The notes under the pieces: generated by a model | Told to the model about the DNA's origin: nothing | What the model saw: only the letters and a program-made list of their open reading frames with translations | Database searches by the model: none | DNA from: Zygnema circumcarinatum SAG 698-1b | Lineage: Eukaryota; Plantae; Zygnematophyceae | Length of the DNA stretch: 64,000 nt | Reading direction: 5' to 3' | Assembly: GCA_037447605.1 (NCBI GenBank) | Contig: CM074813.1 | Span: forward strand, 744,001 to 808,000 | Translations under genes and position numbers: made by a program | Shown: in pieces, positions 18,479 to 35,525 of the stretch | How positions within the stretch are numbered: position 1 is the first letter of the stretch | Layout of the letters: each line of letters begins with the position of its first letter

Positions 18479-20376
18479 AAGAGAGAGAGAGACTAGTGAT
18501 TCAAGTGAAGAATAGCCCGCTCCATCTCAGTCTGCCTTAGAATGAAACCCCTAAATGTCACATTCTTGAGAGACAAACCAAATTTCTTCTCATAAAGTGC
18601 CTCCTATTTTGAAATAACAAAAATCAATAAAGGACAGGCCAGCACTGTAATCGCCAAACCTCAAAATATAGTTCAGAAAAATAGCAGCTTGTGTCAGAAA
18701 ACTTTGCAAGGAACAGAGGGCCACATCAGTCGACGGTTTTGAGTGAGAAAGAGAAAGAGAGAGAGAGAGGGAGGGAGAGCGAGAGAGAGAGAGAGAGAGA
18801 GAGTGAGAGAGAGAGCTGACCTGGCCAACGGAGGCAGAGGTGTTCCATCGGACTGCAGATGTGTGAACTTTTTAAGAAATATGGAAAATGTGCGGCCTTC
18901 AAGAGCAAGTTTAATTTTTGAAGAATCACTCAAACTTGATTGCCTTCTCTATTCTGAGCAACCTACCGACTGCCAAAGAAAAATTTCGACATAATTTGCT
19001 TTTACTTAATTTATCTACATATATTTTTCACTACCAATCGTTGAGCAGAAACATATATTATATAAAACACTAAACTGAACAATGACGGAAGTTTTTTAAA
19101 ACCATAGAAATCTCTGATAAGCGCATCTATCCTGCAAACCCTAATTTTTTGCGTGTATCTAAAGTAAAGTTTCAATTGAACTGGAATTCCTTAGCCTTCA
19201 AAAAAAAATAAGAATGGAGATAGCATTATCTGCATATTAAAAAAGGGTGTGAAAATTTGTCTCCAAGGGAAGAGAAAAAAACATTTCGCAGACATTAGAA
19301 GCTGAGGTCAAGAAAAGATCGAAGTTGTGAACCCTAAAAGTTGCACCTATGGTTATCAAAAAACTCATCAAACAACAATTTTTTTTAATTTAAAACAACT
19401 TACTGTTGAAAAGATTTCCTGGAACAAATTAGTGTGCAGAAAGAAATGGAAAATAAGATGTAATGTAATTTTTTTCAAAGCTTCTAATTCGCCAAACCAA
19501 ACTAGACCACAAATTAGTTCAGAACGAGCGAAAAACGTCAATGAATGACAGGAATTATCGACCTAAAAGATAAAACATAGAAATCCTGCAAGTTCCCTAA
19601 AGTGGAAATTAAAACTTGTGTCTGCTTCAATTAATTTGACATTAAAATGTCCAAAAGGAGGCGAAAACGAAAGGGCTGCACTTCAAGCTATACACAGCCA
19701 GAGAAAATGAACTGAGCAATTAATTTCAAAGAGATCGAGAGAGAGAGAGAGCGCACATCCTCATAGAATTCAACACTGATGACCAAATATTGGGAGGGAG
19801 GGAGGGAGAGAGAGAGGGAGAGGGAGAGAGAGAGGGAGGGAGAGAGGGAGGGAGAGAGAGAGAGAGAGAGATTATCTGAGCTTCATATCCTAGATTCACA
19901 AATTAGTCAAAACCAACCGATCAGGAAATCAAAATTTTTAGATGCCCTCTCCCTCTCCCTCTCCCCCTCTCTCTCTCTCTCCCTCTCCTCTCCCTCTTCC
20001 TCTCCTCTCCCTCTCCCTCTCCCTCTCCCTCTCCAAGTCCTACATCGCAGATTCGTCGCATATCCTACTCCTCTAACTCTAAGCCTTCAATTGGAGCTCA
20101 TTTACAAAGGAGCTCATTTAGAAGCCTAATCTCAAACCCTACCCACTCTCTCTCAACTTGCCGCAAGTTCAGTAGCCCAAACCAAAAGCCTATAGAACCT
20201 CACATTTCAGCAAATTTCCTCCCCCCCTTTTCCTTCCTACTTCTTCCTCCCTTTCGTCCCTTCATTCTTCCTTTTTCCCTTTCTTTCTCTCTCGCTAACG
20301 CTCTCTCCCTCCCTCCCTCTCCCTCTCCCTCTCCCTCTCCCTCTCCCTCTCCGTCTCTCCCCCTCTCTCGTTATCC

Positions 20377-21698
20377 TCAGTAGGGGCGGTATCCCCCCCC
20401 CTCACGGGGCAAGTGGGCCCGCATCGGCCCGAGCAGGTGCTGCTCTGCGGCGGAAGAGGGAGAGGGAGAGAGAGAGGGAGAGGGAGAGGGAGCCTCCCCC
20501 TGACCTCTCTTCCTCTCCACTCTCACTCTCCTCCCTGATATCACTCTCCCATTCACTCCCGCTATGGCAGCCTCTGCCGCTCTCGCAGACTCCAACGACA
20601 CGAAGCCTGTAAAGAGGTCCAGTTAGAGCCGTGGGAGAGAGGGAGGGAGAGAGAGAGGGAGGGAGGAGGGAGGGAGGGAGGGAGGGAGAGAGGGAGGGAG
20701 GGAGAGAGGGAGGGAGAGAGAGAGGCTGCCGATTAACTACTGCAGCTCCACTCTACACAATCATATATCATAGTATTGATACAATGTATAGTAGTAGGGT
20801 TAGGGTTAAGGCAGCAAGTAGGAGGTACAGGATTGTCAAAAGCAGCGGCAACCCTACAGTATGCGGGAAATTTCAAACCAGAGTCTAAAAATCGCTTCTA
20901 CTTTACTGAGAACAAGGTTAGAACGGACATATGTACTCCAAAGAAGTCCTAAAAATCTCAGCAGATATCAGATACACGTCGCATCTATACCTTTTCACAG
21001 CTCATTCACAAGAGACAGAGATAGACGGAGAGGGAAAGGGAGAGGTAGAGGGAGAGGGAGAGAGGGAGAGAGAGAGAGATTATCTGAGCTTCATATCCTA
21101 GATTCACAAATTAGTCAAAACCAACCGATCAGGAAATCCAAAATTTTAGATGTACAGTCTTCGCCGTAAATGTCTACCCCTCACTAAAACGTCCTTGGAA
21201 ACACAAAACATAAATGAATCCCAAATGAAGCCAAAAACTTCCGCCACTGCCAAACAGTTCAGTGCAGTTCATCACACGAAACAAACCCCATGAAGAAACA
21301 TCGACAAATTGGTAACTTTCTCCGCCACTACCTCCTCAACTCCCTACTCTTATATCAGAAAAATAGACCGAAAAAAATCAGACAAAAAAACTTTCCCATC
21401 AGCAGCCTCCTGCTGCTGCTGCTTGCCCTCTTCATATCCTAAAAACAAAGCAGATAAATTTCCCCTGTGAAGGAGAGCAGAGAATTGAGGAGAGAGAGAT
21501 ATGTTTTCCTCTCACCATAGCCTTTGGAGCGACCTGTCTCCTTGTCCACCCCCACACGTGCGTGCACGACCGTACCGTACGGAGCGAAGAGGCCCGCCAG
21601 CTTTTGGTCGTTGTAGTCGTCCGGGACTCCGAATACGAACAAATTGGCGCCACCTGGCAGAGCCATCCGTACAATATGGGAGGGTTCAAACCCTGAAG

Positions 21699-21763
<65 letters not shown>

Positions 21764-22142
21764 AGAGAGAGAGAGAGAGGGGGGGGGGAGAGAGAGAGAG
21801 AAAGAGGGGGGGAGAGAGAGAGAGGGGGAGAGAGAGAGAGGGAGAGAGGGGCTGTGCCCTGAACTTGAAGAAGCTTGAGGAAAGTTAAAACTTAAAGAAA
21901 CTTGATACTTGAAATATGTTTGTTGAAGGAAGTGAGTTTGTTGAAGAGAGTTTCGATACCTTGCGGCTGCATAGCAGAAGACTGTGCTGCTGTTGGCGGC
22001 TGCTGCTGCTGCTGCTGCGGGTTTTGATGGTTTGGTTGAATCTGCTGCTGGGAGTTTTGGTGACTTTGCTGAATCTGGTTTTGGTGGTTTTGTTGCATTT
22101 GCTGCTGCACTTGTCGTAGTACTTGCACTTGTTGATGTTGTT

Positions 22143-22173
<31 letters not shown>

Positions 22174-22677
22174 CTGCTGCTGTTGGTGTTGTTGCAGTTG
22201 TTGTTGCAGTTGATTCAGTTGCGAATTCTGTTGAAGTTGCTGTTGCTGTTGCTGTTCCTGTTGCTGCTTATTTGGAGCAATATTATTCCTTTGCTGCTGC
22301 TGCTGCTGTTGTTGTTGTGGAGGTAGCATCTGTGACGGCTGTACGGGCACAGCCATCGCCATTTGCGCCACAACCGAAGCCGCCTGCTGCGCCTGTTGTG
22401 CCGCTATGAGCACCTGCGGCCTCTCCCATTGGCTGAGGCCCGTCACAGTGTTGAAGTAAAAGAGCTTGTTGTCCGGTCCCTTGTGCTCCGACCACTCGCT
22501 GCTGCCAGCTGCCACCACCTGATTGGCCGCTGCTTCCACACTGTACGGCTCATCTTTAGGAGCAGCCGAAGGGTAATCCTGGGAGGGCAAATAGGAAGCT
22601 GCCACCTGTCTCCCATAGGCAGGCGTAGGGTCTGTTTGGTATTCAGGGGCAGGGAGAGAAGTTGCAACAGCAGTATC
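20377..22677 (-). CDS. WW domain + poly-Q low-complexity region + CELF/BRUNO RRM3-like domain; 3 exons (22677-21960, 21692-21516, 20606-20377); no own start codon, likely the 3' part of the FLX-like gene
   Basis: WW: WSEHKGPDNKLFYFNTVTGLSQWERP, followed by a long Q tract. RRM: GANLFVFGVPDDYNDQKLAGLFAPYGTVVHARVGVDKETGRSKGYG|FVSLESARAAEAAIAGVNGRVISGRRVRVERKR, ending in RPY*. Splice phases are compatible. Confidence 0.85.
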
Positions 22678-25242
22678 CTGCAGAGAAAGGGTTTTGGGAG
22701 TTGAGATGCAGATAAAATGATGAAGGGAGGAAAATGAAAGGTGTTGCGAGAATGAAAGAAAGGAGGAATTGATGCCTGAGAAGGGATTCTACCCTTGAAG
22801 ATGTGCAGCTTCTTTAAAGAAAAGGGAGACCTAATTCATGGGGTCAAATCTGCTAAGAAATTACACGGTCCAAGTTTGGTATAGAAGTACAACAAGCTGT
22901 AGCAAAAGTAGCCCTAGTACTTTGGCGAATGTTCACATCAAGTACTAAAAAAGGGATGTCAAATCGAAACTAAACTGAAAGGATTACTGGACACATAGTG
23001 CGAACTTCTCCTTCAAGCAGAAATGTGCCAAAAAGTGCGGCAATTCCTGCCTTTCAGAGGGCAGAAAACCCTATAAAACAGCCAACCGTTTTGCCATATT
23101 GGAGCAGAAACTGGCCAACTCTATGCAGTCGTTGTAAAAAGGACTGGTAGTAGTGAAAAGAATTCACAAACAGGAGAAAAATTGCAAAGCAGCAATTTTG
23201 ATAAGATAATCTCCAGCTTTGTGGCAGAATAGCCTAGGCCTATGAATGCCTTCAAATTCCTGAAAAAGGTAGTGATCTGAAGAAATGAATTCACTTCTTT
23301 TTCTACGTTCATCGTTACATTTCGCAGCCATTCTAAGCCACTTCTATACTTCGAATAACTCAAAGGAGTACAAGTCAAACAAAGTATGGACTATGAACTA
23401 CGGACGATTCCAAACAGCTGCATACAATAGAAGGGAAAGTCGTGACCTCAACAGGTTGGTCAGCTAACAGACTAAAAGAATTTCAAAGACATTTGAGATT
23501 CCTTAGACGGCTTGATAGTCTTTTTCGAAAGGAAGCTACTCTGTAAAGCCAATAGTGTAATAGGAACCCATGGCTCAAGATTGTATACTGAAAATGTGAT
23601 GATAGTCCACCCCAACGTTCAGCCAGTCAGACTGTTACACTAACGGTTAGTCATTATACTGACTAATGCAAGAAACAAGGAACAAGAAGTCTGCTGCTTG
23701 ACACAAGGTTCAGTCTTTCTATACTCACTAAGTGCAGGAAAGTTCATTGTTAATCATCCACCGAGCTTTAAACAAGAGAAAAACACTTTAATCTCACTCT
23801 ATTTCAACACGATCAAGAATCGAATACCCGGAATGTAACCTATTAACAGCTAAAGCTTTGACTTTTTCAGGATTGACAGTCCATTTTTTCTGCCACCTGC
23901 CAGCTCTATCTCCCTCAGGAAAGGAGGAAAAATGAGTTGAAGCAGAGAGCAAAACTTCACCTCAGCTCTCTTTTTTTCGTGCGCTGCTTCGACCGTCTTG
24001 CATCACCAATGAGGGCTCCTCAGCTTGACCAAAACCTTGGCCAAACTATGACTGAGGGGAGCTGCTCTCCCTGAGCTCAATAGTGGACCAAGAATGGATC
24101 AAAGTTGAAGAACGTACTGCCTATCACGTGAACTATCATCTGCACCTGCTTCAGAAAACAGTCTAGATACTTTCCTGTGTTGCTAAAATAGGACACTACG
24201 TGTCGAAGAATAAGATAAAAAGGCTTTTCTAGGAGGTTGTTTAATCCCAAGTAAAGCTTAGATCAAGCTTCAATGCATTCAAGAAACTCTAAAAATGCAG
24301 AAAATAAAGCTAATTCTGTTCCATACAGTGATGTCCAGACTACTAGCCTACACTACAAGGTAACAACTGCTCAAACTCTCTACCGCTACCAGTCTATACT
24401 CTGCCTAACCTCACTGTACTCTATCTACACAATGTACCCTACTGAAAGATCTTCAAGTACCAACAGCATCGAATTTAAAATTCAGTACTGCTAGAAAGTT
24501 TTGCTGAACAAGTTATCTCCTCTTAAGGAGATCGAAAAGTAACCTTGATATGGCTTGGAGCATGCTATTCATGGACCTGAAATGTGTCTAAACAAAGTCT
24601 TAAACCCTAAAAAATACCTCGAAAAAAAATGCAGCTTCAAGCTTACTATTCACTCAGTGTGCCAGTTTGTGACCAAACACGTTAGAACCTACTTCCATCT
24701 TTGAGCTATTGGCGGCCAAAATCTGCAACAGCCATTCCAATTCAAATTGCAAAAATGTCTATACCTTTATACAACAACATTCTACAAATGCTCACAAAGC
24801 GCTCGACCTGCGTATGATCCTATTTGGACTGAAAATGGTGAACTACTTACTCTACTAGACAATCTTCAGAGACGACCTCTTCTCTTGTTTTTCTGCCACT
24901 GCAAGTTCCGCTAACAACTGCACAATATCGGAGGCATTGAAGGAGCAAACAGCCCTTGCCTCCCAGCCCTTTTCTTTGAATCCTCCGAGAAACAGTACTC
25001 TTCAGCAAATCTACAAATGACTTTAACAAAAACTACGCAGATCATCTGCAGACGGAGAAAAACCAACTGCGAATCTGACAAACTAGCCCTCCAGGCTCTC
25101 CCAACTTCGTAAACAGTCGTCTACTTCCGCAGCGAATTAACAATCTATCGAATTAAGAGGAAAAGCTGAATAGCTCTAAATAGAAACGACCAGCTTCTCC
25201 CCCACATGTGGACCAAACTCCCCCCTCTACTGCAGCCATACC

Positions 25243-27483
25243 CTACCCATGAAACCTTCTCTTATTGCGAGGACGTACATTGGGAGGACCTCGCGCAACT
25301 TCATAAGGGGCTTGCTGAACCCACTGATTCGCTGCAGCGCCATATGCAAATCCGGGGTCCGTGCCTACCCCAATGGGACCCTGAGCATGGGAGGGAGAGG
25401 GAGAGGGAGAGGGAGAGGGAGGGGGAGAGGGAGAGAAAAAGGAGAGGGAGAGGAGCGGGTGGTGGCGAGGGGAGAGAAAGAGGGAGAGGGAGAGCGGGAG
25501 ATGGAGATGGAGAGAGAGAGAGAGAGTCAAAGTCTAACTCCCAATAAAACGCATGAAGCAGACGAGGAAGAGGGAAAGAGAAAGATTTGAAGTCTACTTC
25601 CAAACTAAAAGCCACGACGAATCAAATGGCATATGCTGGACGGTTTTAGAACAGGCTCTCGGTCCTCCCAAACCTTACATGCAGCTGAGATTACAAATTC
25701 AAATTTCACAACAAAGAAACAACTTGATTTTATTTCTTGTACCTGAACTGCGTAACCATTAGCATATGGGGGTGGCTGAGGGGCTGGTCCGGGCGCATAT
25801 CCTGCATCGGCAACTGCATATCCAGCCACACCATATGGAGCAGGAGCCCCTGCAGATGCGAAGAAAGAAACAAATAAACATACAAGAACTTAAGACTTCA
25901 GATAAGGATAGCATAAAGAGCAAAGAACTGACAAAACCAAACAGGCTCAAATAAGGTGGAGCCAAATTTTTCAATACAAAAGAGACAAGACACAAAGGCT
26001 CCAGAAGGTCTAATTCAAAAAAAACTTCAATTTGAACGTCAATTTTCCTGTTCCGCCAACCTTAATATTCACGTACCCCCAGGCCTCTGCACGTTTGTCA
26101 ACTGAGCCTTCAACTTTTCCACTTCCCGCGCCATAGAAACTAAGTTCGCCTCCATCGCTTGCTTCTGCTCGTGCTGCTCCAAGTGTGCTTTTCTCTCAAA
26201 ATCAACCGCTGACCTGCAGGTTTGTAGGGTTCTGAGGGATTTAGAGTTTGTAATTATTCATGGGTGCTAAGGAGGAAACTACTATGTTAATCTGTTAATC
26301 GCCACAGCTACATATCCTCTCCCAAACACCGCAACATGCGACTCGAGTATTAGAAGGAAACCCGGCTACAACCCGTCTGCAGAGGAAAAAGAGTGGAATT
26401 CCGTATACACTACTCTGCAAATGTGTGCAGAAAGGTATTATTTAATCGTTGTAAGCAATGTGTGAATGCACCTGGCACGTTGCAATTCTTGGCGAAGTCC
26501 CTCCACTTCCGCCTGAAGGGGCCCGAACTTCTGCAGGTCTGCATGCATGATCTGGTTGTCCTGCTGCAGCTGCTGCACCTGCTGGCTCAAAGCAAGTCTT
26601 GCTTGGTCAAGCTCGGTCCTTCGGGCCGCTACATTCTGCAGCTCCATTCGCAGCTGATGGATGTCCACTTTCATCGGTTCTGGCAAGGCTCAAATGCAAG
26701 CAACCACAAAAAAAGACACGGATAAAAGAAGAAAAGAATCAGAAAAGTGACAGAAATTAGGTCAAAGGTTCGGATATTGGATGAGCAATTCAGCTACAAC
26801 AAAACAATCTCTTTGAGCGAACCCTAAAGGAAACCCTCTAGTGCTCTCAGACTCTCACAATAACTAAGAAACACAAAAGATTGTTTGTGCCCAGGCGTAC
26901 CAAAGTTGCTCATTCACCTAGAACCCTTTCTCCTGTTCTATTCAAAGTACAACTGTCATTACGATGAATTTCTTTAAAAAGTTAAAAGGAGAGACGCCTC
27001 CCTCCGTCTACCTCCCCACTCTCCCTCCTCTCACGCCACCCCTATCCCCTCCCCTCTATTCCCCCCCCTCTCCCTCTCCCTCCCTCCCTCCCTCCCACCT
27101 GTCGCCCGCAGGTCCGCCTCCATCTTGGCGCCCTTCTCCACGAGCGCCCTGTTCTCCGCCTGCAGCGCCCCCATGGTCTGCTGCAGCCTCTGCATCTCCG
27201 CCTGCGCCGCTGCGAGCTCCTGCCTCAGCGCCACGTGGGTCGCTGCCAGCCTTTGATTCTCCGTCAACAGACGGTGAATCTCGCCCTGCTGCTGCTGCAG
27301 CTTCTGCTCGAGCTGCGCCGCGTTTATGAGCGGGCCCGAAACCACGAGGGCCGGAGGACCCCCCATGGGAGGAGGGGGTCCGTACGGTCCCCCCGGCCCC
27401 CCCGGGCCTCTCAGAATGGGCGGGCCCTGGGGGCCATGGCCGGGCCGCATGCCCATCTGCGGCATCCTGTTGCGATTCGCCAT
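25243..27483 (-). CDS. FLX-like (FLC EXPRESSOR/FLL family) coiled-coil protein, short isoform, 5 exons
   Basis: [58 protein letters not shown]|[17 protein letters not shown]|[31 protein letters not shown] are characteristic FLX-family segments. Tyr/Gly/Pro-rich tail ends RRFHG*. Confidence 0.92.
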
Positions 27484-28379
27484 AGCGGGAGGGAGGAGGG
27501 AGGGAGGGAGAGAGGGAGGGCGGGAGGGAGGGAGGGAGGGAGGGAGAGTGGGAGAGGCAGAGGGAGGGAGAGATGGAGAGGCGAAGAGAGCGATGAAGAG
27601 GGAGAGGGAGGGGGAGGGAGAGGGAGAGAGGAGCAACGTGGTAAATGTGTTCACAGTCACTGTGACTGTCACGCATAGATTTCAAAATTTTGAACAAAAT
27701 CTTCGAACTGCTCGACATGCGACCGTTGAGTTCGGATGGATCCGATACGAGCCAATATAAATCGATACTGTATCATACGATATATCGTAAATATCGAGGT
27801 GACAAAATGTGGACCTATTGGAGGCTTGAGGGCGTGGGCCTATTGAGCACCTCCAATAAGACCTTGCCACGTGTACAAACGTGCCTATGTGGCTTGTCGC
27901 TATTGGGCGATGCTCGGCTCCATAGTTAACAAAAGGAGAGAGAACTTCCTGAGGCGCTGAGTTTGTGGGGACGAGGGACGAGGAGGACGAGGGCCGCCAT
28001 GGATTCATTGGAGGGTAAGCTCTCGCGTCCCTGATGAAACTTCTTGACTCAGATGGGCGCCCTTCTCTCCTTCTCCCAGTCGCTATGCCTCTGCTCCGTT
28101 ATTCCCTGGCCAACTCTCTCTCCTCTCTCTCGTTCTGAGTTTCTCTCGCCTTCCCTCCGCGGCCCCCGCCTTCGGGATTACATATCAGATAAAGAGCGGC
28201 TATTGTTGCTATTTCGATTGTTTTGTGAGGCTATCAATAGTGTCGGAACATGCTGAAAGCTCGGGCTGACAGCTGGATTTGTCAGGAGTAGGGTTGAGGG
28301 AAGAGTCAGGGGAAAAAGGAGCGGCTAGGATTAGAGCCAGGTTTGGATGAGGCTTTGCCTCTCTATTTTAGGTGGAGGT

Positions 28380-28970
28380 AGGGCTAATGTAGGGTTTCAA
28401 GGGTTAGGGTTGGGGTTGGGTTATTGCAGGTTAAGGGTCTAGCTTGGGCCACGATAGGGAATGAAGACTGGTCCCTTATTACGAGGTTGGGATAGGGTTA
28501 GGGTCAGGGTTAGGATTTACAGTTGGGCTAGAGATAGGGCCATTAGGGTTAGGGTTAAGGCTAGGGTTAGGGTTAGGTTTAGGGTTAGGTTTAGGGTTAG
28601 GGTTAAAACCAGGGTTAAAGGTTGGTTTATGGTTTAGGTTAAGGTTTAAAATTAGAATTAGGGTGAAGGCTAGGTTTAGTGGGTTAGGGTTCTGTTTAGA
28701 GTTAGGTAGAGCGTGAGTCAGGGTAAGTGAAAGGTTTGGGTCATGGTCAATGTTAGGGTTAACGTTAGAGTGACTAGGGTCAGTAGGGATAGCGTCATTG
28801 CTAGTGTTAGGGTTTGGGTTAGGGTGATAATGTGAGGATTACGGTTATGGTTAGGTTCAGGTTTAGGGTTTAGGGTTAGGGTTATGATTGGTGTTAGCCC
28901 TGGGATTAGTTTAAGATTAAATGTTGGATTAAGGTTGGCAAGTGTTAGGGTCAGTGTGAGGGTTAGGGCT
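28380..28970 (+). repeat. Degenerate interstitial telomere-like array (TTAGGG/TTTAGGG variants)
   Basis: For example agggttagggttaaggctagggttagggttaggtttagggttaggtttagggttagggtta at 28545-28606. Confidence 0.85.
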
Positions 28971-29659
28971 GCGACCATGAGTATTTTGTAAGGTTGAATT
29001 CAATTTCAAGTGCTGAAAGGAGCGAATGAAATACTCCCTATGATATGGCTTAGAGCGCTTACTTTGAATGTTTCAGGTCTTCTTAAACAAGACGAACTTA
29101 CTTTGAGCAATTAATCGACTAGAAAGTAAATTTGCACAAATTCTCTCGATTTTAAGCAGTATAAAGAAGTATCACTAGAATCCGGGTATCCTCAACTTGT
29201 CACAATCGCCGTGAACTATGAATTTTCTATGGTGGAGTTTCCACCTTAATAAGCGGAAAGACCCAAACTATTTTCCTTGTACACTTCTTTGTTGCCTCAG
29301 TTAGTGTGTTCTCTTTTACGAGAAAGAGATTTTTTTTTTTTTTAGGTCATGAAGAACTGAAAGAGAAAATCCACGTATGGTTCATTGCAATGAACTGAAC
29401 GGCGAGGGTGGGTAGTTCCATGCTGCTCTTTTGACTGTATAACGATGTCTCGGAAGTCGTCACTTTGGAACTTTTCCAGGAATGGAGGAATAAGTAGGAG
29501 GGCGATGAAAATGGGCGGTGACATCGAGGAGGAAAATAATGTTCGGAGACGAGAGATATTGCCAAATAAGGCAATTGGTGCTGAGGTGGCAAACCGGGAT
29601 TGGTGGAGGTGAAGCCAACGTAGTGACGACGCACAAGGAGAGTGAAAGGAGGGGCGGAA

Positions 29660-31747
29660 ATGCCTCGGAAAGATCGGGTTGCGTATTTCTACGACGGTAT
29701 GCAAAAACCCTAAAAATCTTAAAAACTCTAAAAACTCTAAAGCCCTAAAACCCTAGACTTCAATCATACAAACCTCAAAACTGTTCACTTCTTGTAATTT
29801 GATAAAATTTGTGTTCCCCAACCAAATATGGCTAAGTTCGTCCAAGTTTGATCGAGGCTGACGTGGATTGACCCCGTCTGACCTGATTGACCGAGTCTGA
29901 CCCACTTTTACCCTTGTTTGAGCTAATTGATTAGCTCAAGCTCGATTTAAGTTGAGTTGAGTTGACCTTGTCTGACACTCATCTATTTTGATCTAATCTA
30001 GATTTCTCTTGTTTGTCCTGACCTGTTTTGGCTCGTTGTGGCTTGTTTTCACTGACTTGACCTTGATCTACTTCGTTTTGTCTAACCTTGTTTGACTTAT
30101 TTTGACCAAGTTTGACCTTATGGAGGACATGTGATGGCACGTTTTTGTTGCAGGAGATGTGGGGAGTGTGTATTATGGCCCCAATCACCCCATGAAACCA
30201 CATAGACTGTGCATGACTCATAGCCTTGTACTCGCATACGGACTGCACAAGAAGCTTGAGATCTTTGTGAGCAGCATGCCCTGCTGTTCCGTTAACTGAG
30301 AGGGGATTTGGAGAGGGAGGAGGGAGGGAAGGAGGGAGGGAGGGAGGGAGGGAGGTGAAGGTGAGAGAGTGAGGAGAGTTGCCAAGTGACCAGCAGAAAA
30401 GGAGGATTCGATTCTTTAAGGGATTTCTGGTTTTGCAATCACTTATTCTGCCCTTGTATGCAATTTATATTTGCCTGTTACTTGGTGTGATCTTATTTTT
30501 CTATAGAAGTGGCTTTGAAGTAAAGCATTGGTGAGTATTGGCAGAGGCCCCACAAAGCGTACCCTGTGGAGTTGGCTCAGTTTCACAGCACCGACTATGT
30601 GGAGTTTCTGCACCGCATTACGCCCAATATGCAGCATCAATACCTTAAAGAGATGAAGAGATGTATTGTTGTCTTTCCTCTCTTTACCGACTTTTTCTCT
30701 CCTCCTTTCGCTCTCCCTTTAGTACTCAACCTTTGCATTTCGTCTCCCATTTCCTTTTCTCTCGCCTCTGTCTTCCTTTTGCTTTAGTCGTTTTCTGTCT
30801 CACGTACTCCTTTGCTTTCTTTCCCTACCGTCTTTCTCCCTCTGTATTCCCAGCTTAATCTGCATTTGACTTCTGCACTTTTTAAAGCTATTTGGGTTCT
30901 TTGGGATGAAACTTTCGCAGATAATATGGGAGAGGACTGTCCTGTATTTCATGACTTATTTGAATTCTGTCGGATTTATGCTGGCGGGACCATCGGTAAG
31001 TCTCAATTGTTACTGCTTTGCGTCGTCTCTCTCTCTCTCATCCCTTTCCTGATTCCCAAATTTGTTGTGTAAGGCTCTCCCTCCCACATCTTCCCATCCA
31101 CATCGTCCTCCCCTCTTCTCCGCTCTCATGCCCTCCTTTCCGCTTTTCCCAATCTCTTCCTACTCCTCCTGCCACACTCCCTCTTTCACCTGCTTCCCAC
31201 TGCCACCATGCAAGCCCTCCCCATATCCTTTCCTTCGGCCCTCCTTCAATCTTTCAACCTTGGTCTCCTTTTCCTTTCCCCCTCTCCCTCCTCCCCCCTC
31301 CGATACAGCCTCATTCCTCCCTCTTCCCCCGTCCCGTTTCTTTCCCTCTTACCTCCCCCTTCCGTCCGCCTATCACCCCTCCTTCCGCTCCTCCCCTCCC
31401 TCTCATTCCACACCTCTCTTTCGCCCTTCCATCCACCCTGCCTCCCTCATCGCTCCTCCCCTTCCCTTCCCCCTTCTTCCCCCCCTCCCTTTCTCTCACA
31501 CTTTCTTCGACTCTCCCCCCCTTTCTCCTCCCTCCTACTCACCTCTCCCTTCCCCCCTTCCCCCCCCCCCCCCTTCCAATCACCCTCCTTCCTCCCACTT
31601 TCCCCCTTCCCTATCTTTCCCGCTTGCCTCCCACCTCCGCTCACCCCCTCCTCCCCTCACTCTCTCTCTAACCTTCCCCTCTCTCTCTCTCTCTCTCTCT
31701 AACCTTCCCCTCTCTCTCTTTCTAACCTTCCCTCCTCTCTCTCTGTA

Positions 31748-31788
<41 letters not shown>

Positions 31789-32615
31789 TCCCTCTNNNNN
31801 NNNNNGGCGCATGGGTATGTTTGAAATGGGTTACAGATTTAGTATGGGTGTCTATGTGGCTTTCTGCATTGCTGATTAAAGCAATGCTTTGTTTTTCCAT
31901 TTCGTCTCCCCCAGAGTTATGACAGTCAGTTTTCACAAATATGGCGATTTTTTTTTCCCAGGCACTGGTGATGTGAAGGTACTTCTTCTCGCTTTTCCTG
32001 ACCCAAAAGAAGAAAACGGCCCTTTTAAAAGTAATAGTTAGACTCTTTTAAAAGCTAAAAGGGTAAGGTGTGCATGGTAACCCTAAAAACTTGAGTCTTA
32101 GGAAAAAAAAAAAATCCTCCTTTAGTTGTTCTTTCGCATTCTATAGTTCTCTTGGTTGAATTCAATCGTTCTCCATTATCGTTTTTCAGTCATACCTTCT
32201 TTTTGGTCCTCGCCTGCAAGGAAAATAGTAATTTTTATGTGTGTGTGTGTATATATATATATATACAATGTCTCGCGCAATGTCATAGTTCGTAAGGTAA
32301 TGTTCACGTTTGTTTGCAAGGGGGGTTCAGGATTTGGGGGAGAAAGATGGAAAGTATTATGCAGTGAATGTTCCGTTCAAAGATGGAATCGATGATACTC
32401 AATTTCTTCGCATGTTTAAGCCGGTACGCCACGCATTGCATTGCATCCTCAGTTTCCTATTTGTATTTCATGTTTCTTTTTTTTTTTCTGAAAAAGGGGA
32501 CAAAGAGAGGGGCCTTGTAGAAGGGGCATGTAAGAGATAGACCGAGGAAATGGAGGGAAGCGAGAGCGAGAGCGAGAGCGAGAGAGAGCGAGAGCGAGAG
32601 CGAGAGAGAGAGAGA

Positions 32616-32686
<71 letters not shown>

Positions 32687-35525
32687 AGAGAGAGAGGAAG
32701 TAGACGAAAAAGAGATAGACGACAGAGGAGGGTCAAATTAATTGAGTGCAGAGAAAGCACTGCGACGATATCTGTACAGATATCGTCGCAGTGCTACGAA
32801 CAGGTCCCAATGTGAAATTGTTTTTGCTTGCTTGCTTCTTTTTTGCAGATTATCAGCAAAGTGATGGAGATATATCGACCCGGAGCAGTGGTCCTGCAAT
32901 GCGGGGCGGACTCTCTTGCAGGAGACCGGCTCGGATGCTTCAACCTCTCTCTCGATGGTGCCTCTACCCTCTATCTCTCACTGATCACACAAGTGCTTTC
33001 GAATCAGTATCCCGATTCATAAACTGAGATACTTTTAAGACCTGTATTGCTTTTTTTCTTCTTTTTAAGGGCTCGTTTGGATAAGGCTTCTGCACCGGTC
33101 TACGGTCTTTCGTAGACTTTTTGGTCTTTTTATGGTGTTTGGGTTGTGAAGAGTGTAGGGATACAACTTGTTGGAATTTTAGGGTTTCTGAGGTTTCTCG
33201 GGTTCGTTGAAACTTTCTTTGGTTTGGAGTCCTCTGGAGTTCTCTTGAAAGGAGATGGGAAATTTTTTATTGCTGTAAACTTTCAAATATATACCCCGGT
33301 TATGTCATGCTCTTGAACTCTTGCTTTTGAGAAATTTTGGGACTAACTTAAAAATTATTGTTTTGGGCAGGCCACTCGGAATGTGTCGCGTTCATGAAGA
33401 AGTTTAACGTTCCGCTTTTGGTAAGAATATGTGGTATGCAGTTTCCGCTGTAACAGTTCCATGTGAACAAACTCAGTTACAGTTCCTTTGAACTGTAACT
33501 GAGTTGAGCTGAACTATGAGAGTTTATGTCCAACTTATTGGAATTTTAGGGTTCCTGAAGTTTCTGGTTCGTTGAAAACTTCTTTGGTTGGGAGTCTGCT
33601 GCTGTAATCCATTTACGGTGAACCCAACTGAATCCGTTCAACGGTGATCCATGTCGTTCAGTGAAGGCCAGTTGAGATCTAATGATTGCCCTGATTGGAG
33701 ATTTGGAGAAAGGTCCAGATAGTTCTGCAGATTGGCTGTTCCATGTAACTGATTCTGTGCCGTTATCCGTTGCAGGTTACGGGCGGGGGCGGGTACACGA
33801 AACAAAACGTTGCCCGCTGTTGGGCGGTCGAAACGGGTGTGCTTGTAGATACTGAATTACCCAATGGTAGGATGCCACCTGGCGCAGAAAAAATAGTCCA
33901 AATTTATGCCTTGCTCTGAAGATAATAGATAGTTCGCAAGCAATACTTTTTTTTTCGAACTTTTCCTAATTTTTTTGTCAGCTTGTTTGCCTCTGTTCTG
34001 TCTTTCGTGGTTGGATTAATTTAATCTTTGTCGAGATGATGTTTCTGTTGGCTGTGCAGATATACCTCATAACGACTATTACGAATATTTCAAGCCGGAT
34101 TTTATGCTCAAAATTCCCAACCCTAATCCTGTGGTACGGATTCAGGAGGGCCTCTTGTTCTTTGGGATTGTTTGAAGGAAAGGGCCAAATGTCGACGGCG
34201 TTCTCAAATGTGATGCAGCGCATGATGTTACATCACGGTGGCATGCCTGGGCGCGATGTGATGTGATGTGATGTGATGTGATGCAATGTGATGTGATGTG
34301 ATGCAATGTGATGTGATGTGATGCAATGTGATGTGATGTGATGCAATGTGATGTGATGTGATGCAATGTGATGTGATGTGATGCAATGTGATGTGATGTG
34401 ATGTGATGTGATGTGATGTGATGTGATGTGATGCAATGTGATGTGATGTGATGCAATGTGATGTGATGTGATGTGATGTGATGTGATGTGATGCAATGTG
34501 ATGTGATGCAACGTGATGTGATGTGATGCAACGTGATGTGATGTGATGCAATGTGATGTGATGTGATGCAATGTCATGTGATGTGATGCAATGTCATGTG
34601 ATGTGATGCAATGTGATGTGATGTGATGCAATGTGATGTGATGTGATGCAACGTGATGTGATGTGATGCAATGTGATGTGATGTGATGCAATGTGATGTG
34701 ATGTGATGTGATGTGATGTGATGTGTGATGTGATGCAATGTGATGTGATGTGATGCAATGTGATGTGATGTGATGCAATGTGATGTGATGTGATGCAATG
34801 TGATGTGATGTGATGCAATGTGATGTGATGTGATGCAATGTGATGTGATGTGATGTGATGCAATGTGATGTGATGTGATGCAATGTGATGTGATGTGATG
34901 TGATGTAATGTGATGTAATGTATGGCCGGATGTGGCATGACGTTGCATGGCAGGAGAACATGAACGGCAAGGCGTACTTGAGCGGAGTGAAGGTCGCGGT
35001 CATGGAGAACCTCCGCAACATCATCCACGCGCCGAGCGTGCAGATGCATGAGGTCATGACCCTGCACTGCTGCGCGCATACTCCTTATTATAGCTGCTAT
35101 TGTTCTGTGTCTTTCTGAAGCAACCCTGCAGCGGAGAATACACATTCAGATAGGAGCATTTCCTGACACTACTTTCTTCGTTTCTCTCTCTCTCTCTCTC
35201 TCTCCCTTCCCCCCCCCCCCCTCTCTCCTGCAGCTCCCCCCCGATGTCTACGTTCCGGATTACGATGAAGACGAGGCCAACCCTGACGAGCGAATGGACC
35301 GTACGCCCTGCTCCTCCCTAACCCTACCCAGACCCTTCGTCTCTATGTCATCCCTTTCTATGATTAGTTCCCGTTTCCGTTCCGTTGGAGTTTAACGGAT
35401 TCCTGTGTTTCCATGTGCCCCCTCCCCCCCCCCCTTCCTTTGCAGAGCACTTGCAGGACCGGCTGGTCGAGAAGGATGGCGAGTACTACGAGGACGACCG
35501 CGACAACGACCACGGGGGGGGCTAG
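29660..35525 (+). CDS. HDA9: Class I (RPD3-family) histone deacetylase, HDA9/HDAC3 type; central exons missing at gap 31796-31805
   Basis: [13 protein letters not shown]|[31 protein letters not shown]|[22 protein letters not shown]|[24 protein letters not shown] [gap] [21 protein letters not shown]|..[20 protein letters not shown]|[16 protein letters not shown]|..HAPSVQMHE|[22 protein letters not shown]|..[14 protein letters not shown]. Confidence 0.96.
34257..34920 (+). repeat. (TGATG)n/(CAATG) pentanucleotide satellite filling most of an HDA9 intron
   Basis: Directly visible; ends ~35 nt before the acceptor at 34953. Confidence 0.95.

Follow-up and report, generated by a model that had tools for sequence, protein, structure and literature searches.

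An FLX-type coiled coil joined to a WW domain, a glutamine-rich tract and a probably FCA-derived RRM in a single gene of Zygnema circumcarinatum

The window analyzed here is a stretch of 64,000 nucleotides from the zygnematophycean alga Zygnema circumcarinatum SAG 698-1b (GCA_037447605.1, contig CM074813.1, positions 744,001 to 808,000), and all coordinates refer to this window. Its minus strand carries an eight-exon gene with GT-AG introns, which runs from the ATG at 27483 to the stop codon at 20377. The joined frame contains no internal stop, and the predicted product has 687 amino acids, or 674 if an inner acceptor of exon 7 (21653) is used. It consists of an N-terminal coiled coil of the FLX/FLL family, a WW domain, a glutamine-rich tract and a C-terminal RNA recognition motif (RRM). 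The coiled coil and the WW domain are present in one transcript, and the fusion is real. A one-gene fusion of this kind had been proposed in an earlier sequence-only reading, and the elements which it had named (coiled coil, phase-0 donors at 25742 and 25278, acceptor 22678/22677, WW domain, RRM and RPY stop) all lie on the minus strand at the places it gave.

Exon 1 (27099..27483) encodes the start codon, a Gly/Pro-rich leader and the first half of the coiled coil and ends in a phase-1 donor. The coiled coil continues through exon 2 (26472..26679), whose phase-2 donor at an A/R position is common to fern and lycophyte genes, and ends in exon 3 (26077..26213) with a phase-1 donor that is matched in the same genes. 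Exon 4 (25743..25849) encodes a low-complexity linker rich in Gly/Tyr/Pro, in which a single PPPY motif occurs, and exon 5 (25279..25380) a further part of the linker. The donor of exon 5 is the switch point of the gene, at which contigs either splice to 22677 or read on. Reading on adds 11 codons including a basic cluster and then a stop (25243..25278), resulting in an FLX-only protein of 324 amino acids with a basic tail that resembles algal FLX-only proteins. Intron 5 (22678..25278; 2,601 nucleotides, GT-AG, 41% GC, CpG-poor) is the longest of the gene and partly transcribed; the gene start, by contrast, is a GC/CpG-rich stretch. Exon 6 (21960..22677) encodes linker, the WW domain (about 22410-22495) and a poly-Gln/prion-like tract and ends in a phase-1 donor. 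As had been noted from the letters alone, it offers no in-frame ATG ahead of the WW domain, and an in-frame stop lies directly upstream of its acceptor. The N-terminal half of the RRM is encoded by exon 7 (21516..21692), which has two in-frame acceptors, 21692 and the presumably used 21653. Intron 7 is in phase 1 and interrupts the RNP1 Gly codon, as in fern genes. Exon 8 (20377..20606) contributes the C-terminal half and a tail that ends in RPY-stop (20379-20377), similar to a PY-type nuclear localization signal. We take the PY end and the basic tail to be putative nuclear import signals, which they resemble.

Each exon was searched against the databases on its own, and the joined model was analyzed in scripts. 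The WW domain of exon 6 matched PF00397 (E 4e-9), and the RRM, split over exons 7 and 8, matched PF00076 (E 9.7e-9 and 0.0095); a Pfam scan of exons 1 to 3 gave generic coiled-coil matches only, Pfam having no FLX model. Both Trp residues, the aromatic row and the Pro are retained in the WW domain, with the aromatics of the binding site conserved, and both RNP motifs are kept in the RRMs of the window protein and of Chara. The linker between WW domain and RRM is 152 amino acids long and consists of 51% Gln. In the Protein Atlas, the complete protein had no match, and the RRM matched generic RRM clusters only. In the AlphaFold model of a homologue, a long helix and the folded WW and RRM domains are connected by disordered linkers.

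The transcript data are contigs of the runs X1 and X2, which stem from two studies and which we take to be RNA on account of their splicing. Contigs of both runs carry the junction 25279->22677, skipping exactly the 2,601 nucleotides of intron 5, and no 5' partner of 22677 other than exon 5 was seen in either. Exon 4 is joined to exon 5 in both runs, with loose ends at 25384, and the length of an X1 contig is consistent with exons 1 to 5 plus 56 nucleotides of 5' untranslated region. The sequence-only reading had considered both phase-0 donors as possible partners of the WW exon: the donor at 25278 is used in this way, and the one at 25742 joins exon 5 instead. The join 25743->22677 is in frame on paper and was not seen in the X1 and X2 contigs, which drop rare variants. 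The locus was absent from the contigs of the runs X8 and X9. Both runs likewise contain contigs that extend past exon 5 into intron 5, reaching 24369 and 23211, with the frame closing at 25243; they may represent a 3' extension of the short form, i.e. a polyadenylated isoform, or unspliced RNA. Contig depth is no measure of expression.

At the 3' side, the X1 contig with the WW domain runs 139 nucleotides past the donor of exon 6, exactly the length of exon 7 from 21653 plus one shared base. We infer that it enters exon 7 via this acceptor, the other reading being a retained intron that ends in the AG repeat; 21653 is favored because the fern intron site sits just before the RRM. The compared stretch was chosen so as to leave out a 148-nucleotide AG repeat; the joins of exon 6 to 7 and of 7 to 8 are predicted ones. 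Within intron 5, an AG/GT-bounded segment of 221 nucleotides (23962-24182, minus strand) shifts the frame, contains stops and closely matches the extent of a separate low-depth contig (23960-24189); it is a possible poison exon, with no joint seen for it. A low-depth X2 contig at 22868-23234 carries, upstream of the AG 23235/23234, 31 letters without a counterpart in the window.

A search with exon 1 returned 216 clusters of the FLX family. Among the best 150, for which the domain make-up was scored, six combine FLX, WW and RRM and three FLX and WW. A second homologue search added eight further full fusions, which brings the total to 14 full fusions besides the window gene, along with 3 FLX-WW proteins. 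The order FLX-WW-Q-rich-RRM-PY was found in Chara braunii, Psilotum, Pteridium, Ceratopteris and Adiantum, and FLX plus WW without the RRM in the lycophyte Diphasiastrum. The architecture had at first appeared foreign to land-plant FLX proteins; it does occur there, and in Chara, under the name 'hypothetical protein' or generic WW-domain names (GBG78372.1, KAH7279964.1, GOP47_0016919, GOP47_0022655). Since the Chara gene is a single intronless contiguous genomic open reading frame and a fern-type member is a contiguous open reading frame on 34 public contigs, the fusion is not an artefact of gene models. Four to five intron sites are common to the fern genes and the window gene: in phase 2 at A/R, in phase 1 after the coiled coil and in phase 0 before the WW exon, together with phase-1 sites at the start of the RRM (one codon off) and in RNP1. 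In the lycophyte gene, two introns of phase 0 resemble introns 4 and 5, and the annotation includes an FLX-only isoform that arises via another donor. No seed-plant or bryophyte fusion was among the retrieved homologues, the searches not being exhaustive, and a Chara coiled-coil query was swamped, returned 6 proteins and does not define the range. In one fern subclade the coiled coil is internally duplicated and RNP1 and RNP2 have drifted, a change in the motifs which suggests that RNA binding has been lost. In the literature outside subscription journals, we found neither a description of an FLX-WW-RRM fusion nor a paper on a third RRM of FCA. The window gene belongs to an unnamed FLX subfamily and is neither an FCA nor a CELF member. 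Its place in the trees points to a streptophyte alga, probably one of the Zygnematophyceae.

The coiled coil is homologous to the FLX/FLL family, and its matches include proteins named FLX-like 1, 2 and 3. The FLX tree groups it with proteins of Chara, Coleochaete, Netrium and Closterium in a clade of algae (98) that is separate from those of FLX-like 1, 2 and 3. It lies outside the clade with Iris FLX-like 2, so that an orthology specific to FLL2 is not found; the gene is likely a pre-duplication co-orthologue of the FLX/FLL genes. Two Coleochaete FLX transcripts differ solely at the C terminus, and one of them resembles the donor read-through (alternative processing at the same gene end). 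At the Closterium FLX locus, the gene's own coding exons recur in numerous degenerate tandem copies.

The origin of the tail can be traced by comparison with FCA. In Arabidopsis, FCA contains two RRMs plus a WW domain flanked by prion-like regions (PMC11962161). The order RRM-RRM-WW-RRM3 is present in FCA-type proteins from Chara, Sphagnum, Riccia, Calypogeia, Ceratodon and Physcomitrium (RefSeq-named FCA), several of which end in PY. This third RRM after the WW domain is highly conserved in Chara, moss and liverwort FCA and missing from Arabidopsis FCA as described. In the RRM tree, 15 fusion RRMs form one clade (97/88), in the order Chara, window, ferns, that adjoins FCA RRM3. The grouping of fusion RRMs and FCA RRM3 is supported with 88/90 in the presence of an RRM1/2 outgroup and with 95/92 in its absence. 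The sequence-only reading had likened the RRM to CELF/BRUNO RRM3; a grouping with animal CELF RRM3 was rejected (p-AU 0.01), and the identity of the window RRM is 50-54% to FCA RRM3 versus 37-46% to CELF RRM3. The WW domain is 42-54% identical to the FCA WW domain. Taken together, the tail probably corresponds to the C-terminal half of an ancestral three-RRM FCA. A Chromera velia protein has the order RRM-WW-RRM3-like with a PY end, and this similarity suggests that the WW plus RRM3 module predates plants.

Building on these data, we consider with moderate confidence that the best explanation is an old lineage of FLX proteins with an FCA tail, acting as a scaffold with an optional tail in nuclear 3'-end processing and controlled by a switch at intron 5. 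The long form would oligomerise via the coiled coil and thereby display several WW domains, prion-like tracts and RRMs together; the PY end would bring it into the nucleus, the RRM would bind RNA weakly, and the WW domain would bind Pro-rich ligands, FY/WDR33 by analogy with FCA. The FCA WW domain binds FY and promotes the proximal polyadenylation of FCA's own pre-mRNA (PMC2874999). FLL2 promotes large FCA condensates in Arabidopsis (PMC11962161). Beside FCA, the long form could thus help to concentrate 3'-end-processing factors by gathering RNA and factors of the FY type in a multivalent nuclear hub. Read-through of the exon-5 donor would yield the short FLX-only scaffold, and the choice at intron 5 would set the ratio of long to short form, possibly by FCA-type proximal polyadenylation. 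The proposed one-gene analogue of FLL2 and FCA holds in part: the tail is more FCA-like than had been assumed, and the coiled coil belongs to an algal clade and is not specific to FLL2. The fusion is not a complete FCA plus FLL2 in one gene, because RRM1-2, the half that forms the core oligomer of FCA (PMC11962161), is missing. More tentatively, the ancestral streptophyte FLX may have had an optional FCA-derived tail with a one-intron switch by FCA/FY-type proximal polyadenylation, giving a free scaffold and a covalent scaffold-WW-prion-RRM hub; in seed plants, only the short form would have survived and FCA would have lost its RRM3, with the non-covalent FLL2-FCA partnership as a relic.

Several observations weigh against the proposed FLX-FCA lineage and its switch. 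With the RRM1/2 outgroup, a root between FCA RRM3 and all other RRMs was not rejected (p-AU 0.32), and the trees sampled CELF RRM3 and left out land-plant BRN RRM3. The WW domain alone scores 33 bits against PRP40A WW1 and 30-37 bits against FCA WW domains. In the WW/RRM module, the introns sit at other sites than in FCA genes, the nearest being a 1-nucleotide shift in the RNP1 Gly codon; such differences would fit the arrival of the tail as a retrocopy or a later turnover of introns. FCA RRM1-2 are missing from the fusion, in which a single RRM stands at the C terminus. The intronic contigs may be unspliced pre-mRNA. The RNP motifs have drifted in one fern subclade and the RRM is missing from lycophyte copies; therefore, not every member of the lineage can depend on RNA binding. 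In the FLX tree, proteins with and without the fusion are intermixed (5 changes), and some rows counted as 'FLX-only' could be fragments or short isoforms; since the fusion RRMs form a single clade, this pattern fits an optional or repeatedly lost tail. Moreover, one Closterium FLX locus has no tail within 6 kb.

Arabidopsis FLX and FLL4 join a FRIGIDA-type complex, and the FCA-derived fusion could by analogy be a transcription or splicing adaptor, its coiled coil joining such a complex and its WW domain binding Pro-rich splicing or polymerase-associated proteins in the manner of the PRP40/TCERG1 WW domains. The best solved-structure matches of the WW domain (PRP40A, TCERG1, WBP4), the position of the coiled coil outside the FLL2 clade and the mostly separate foci of FCA and FLL2 (PMC11962161) point in this direction. 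However, the solved structures matched include no plant FCA WW domain, so their ranking cannot favor PRP40; tandem WW and FF domains are missing, and the WW domain stands in a Gln-rich context upstream of an FCA-type RRM3 and an FCA-type end. We regard the adaptor as rather unlikely.

Less probable still is that a CELF/BRUNO-like gene, or some generic donor of WW and RRM, supplied the tail, which would make the likeness to FLL2-FCA convergent. The resemblance of the RRM to CELF RRM3 in solved structures, the alternative rooting, the intron sites unlike FCA and the existence of the Chromera protein are in line with such an origin, but identity and tree grouping favor FCA RRM3, and the order WW, Gln-rich, RRM, PY matches Chara FCA, whereas the sampled CELFs have no WW domain. 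It is quite improbable that the long form, lacking RRM1-2, works as a competitor or decoy that titrates FY or FCA away and opposes proximal polyadenylation, with the short form as ordinary scaffold: FCA function needs RRM2, the oligomer core is the RRM half (PMC11962161) and the RRM is decayed or lost in fern and lycophyte copies with intact WW domains, but both RNP motifs are kept in the RRMs of the window protein and Chara. Finally, two neighboring genes with occasional read-through splicing, as the length of intron 5 and the complete short reading frame ending at 25243 might suggest, are largely refuted and hardly credible, as exon 5 is the sole 5' partner of 22677 in both runs and other genes, one of them intronless, carry the fusion constitutively. 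A separate WW-RRM gene with its own transcription start site was rejected as well, a scan of intron 5 having found neither an ATG-bearing first exon nor a CpG-rich promoter-like stretch.

Upstream of the gene, about 20 scattered AACCCT hexamers at 28300-29300 form a degenerate telomere-like tract. Open reading frame pieces on the plus strand at about 30800-33000 resemble, in their motifs, a class I histone deacetylase gene in head-to-head orientation to the fusion gene. An Rfam search of 19500-29500 gave no matches.

In Arabidopsis, FLL2 was linked to FCA by genetics, and a natural conserved fusion is independent evolutionary support for it. If the tail is of FCA origin, the fusion dates the FLX-FCA link to before land plants, hints that the FLL2-FCA condensate partnership is far older than flowers and points to FCA's C-terminal half as the part that matters beside the coiled coil. 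It also draws attention to the third RRM of Chara and bryophyte FCA, which Arabidopsis FCA lacks, and offers Ceratopteris and algae as test systems.

Compared with known systems, the window protein shares with FLX and FLL1-4, including Arabidopsis FLL2, a homologous coiled coil with conserved family motifs and intron sites common to FLX-domain genes, whereas the named seed-plant members retrieved have no WW domain or RRM. With Chara and bryophyte FCA it has in common a WW domain in Gln-rich/prion-like sequence, followed by RRM3 and usually a PY end; in contrast to FCA, it has the FLX coiled coil in place of RRM1-2, and its WW domain precedes the longest Gln tract. CELF/BRUNO RRM3 belongs to the same branch of the RRM superfamily, with a similar domain start and a PY-type end, but CELFs have RRM1-2 and neither WW domain nor coiled coil, and the fusion RRM forms a separate clade with lower identity to them. 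PRP40 and TCERG1 differ by tandem WW domains and FF repeats; the window protein has a single WW domain and no FF domain in the exon scans. The closest counterparts are the unnamed fern and Chara proteins, which have the same domain order, a monophyletic RRM and, in the fern genes, common introns; they differ in that the Chara gene is intronless and the fern genes have no equivalent of exon 5 or of the long read-through tail.

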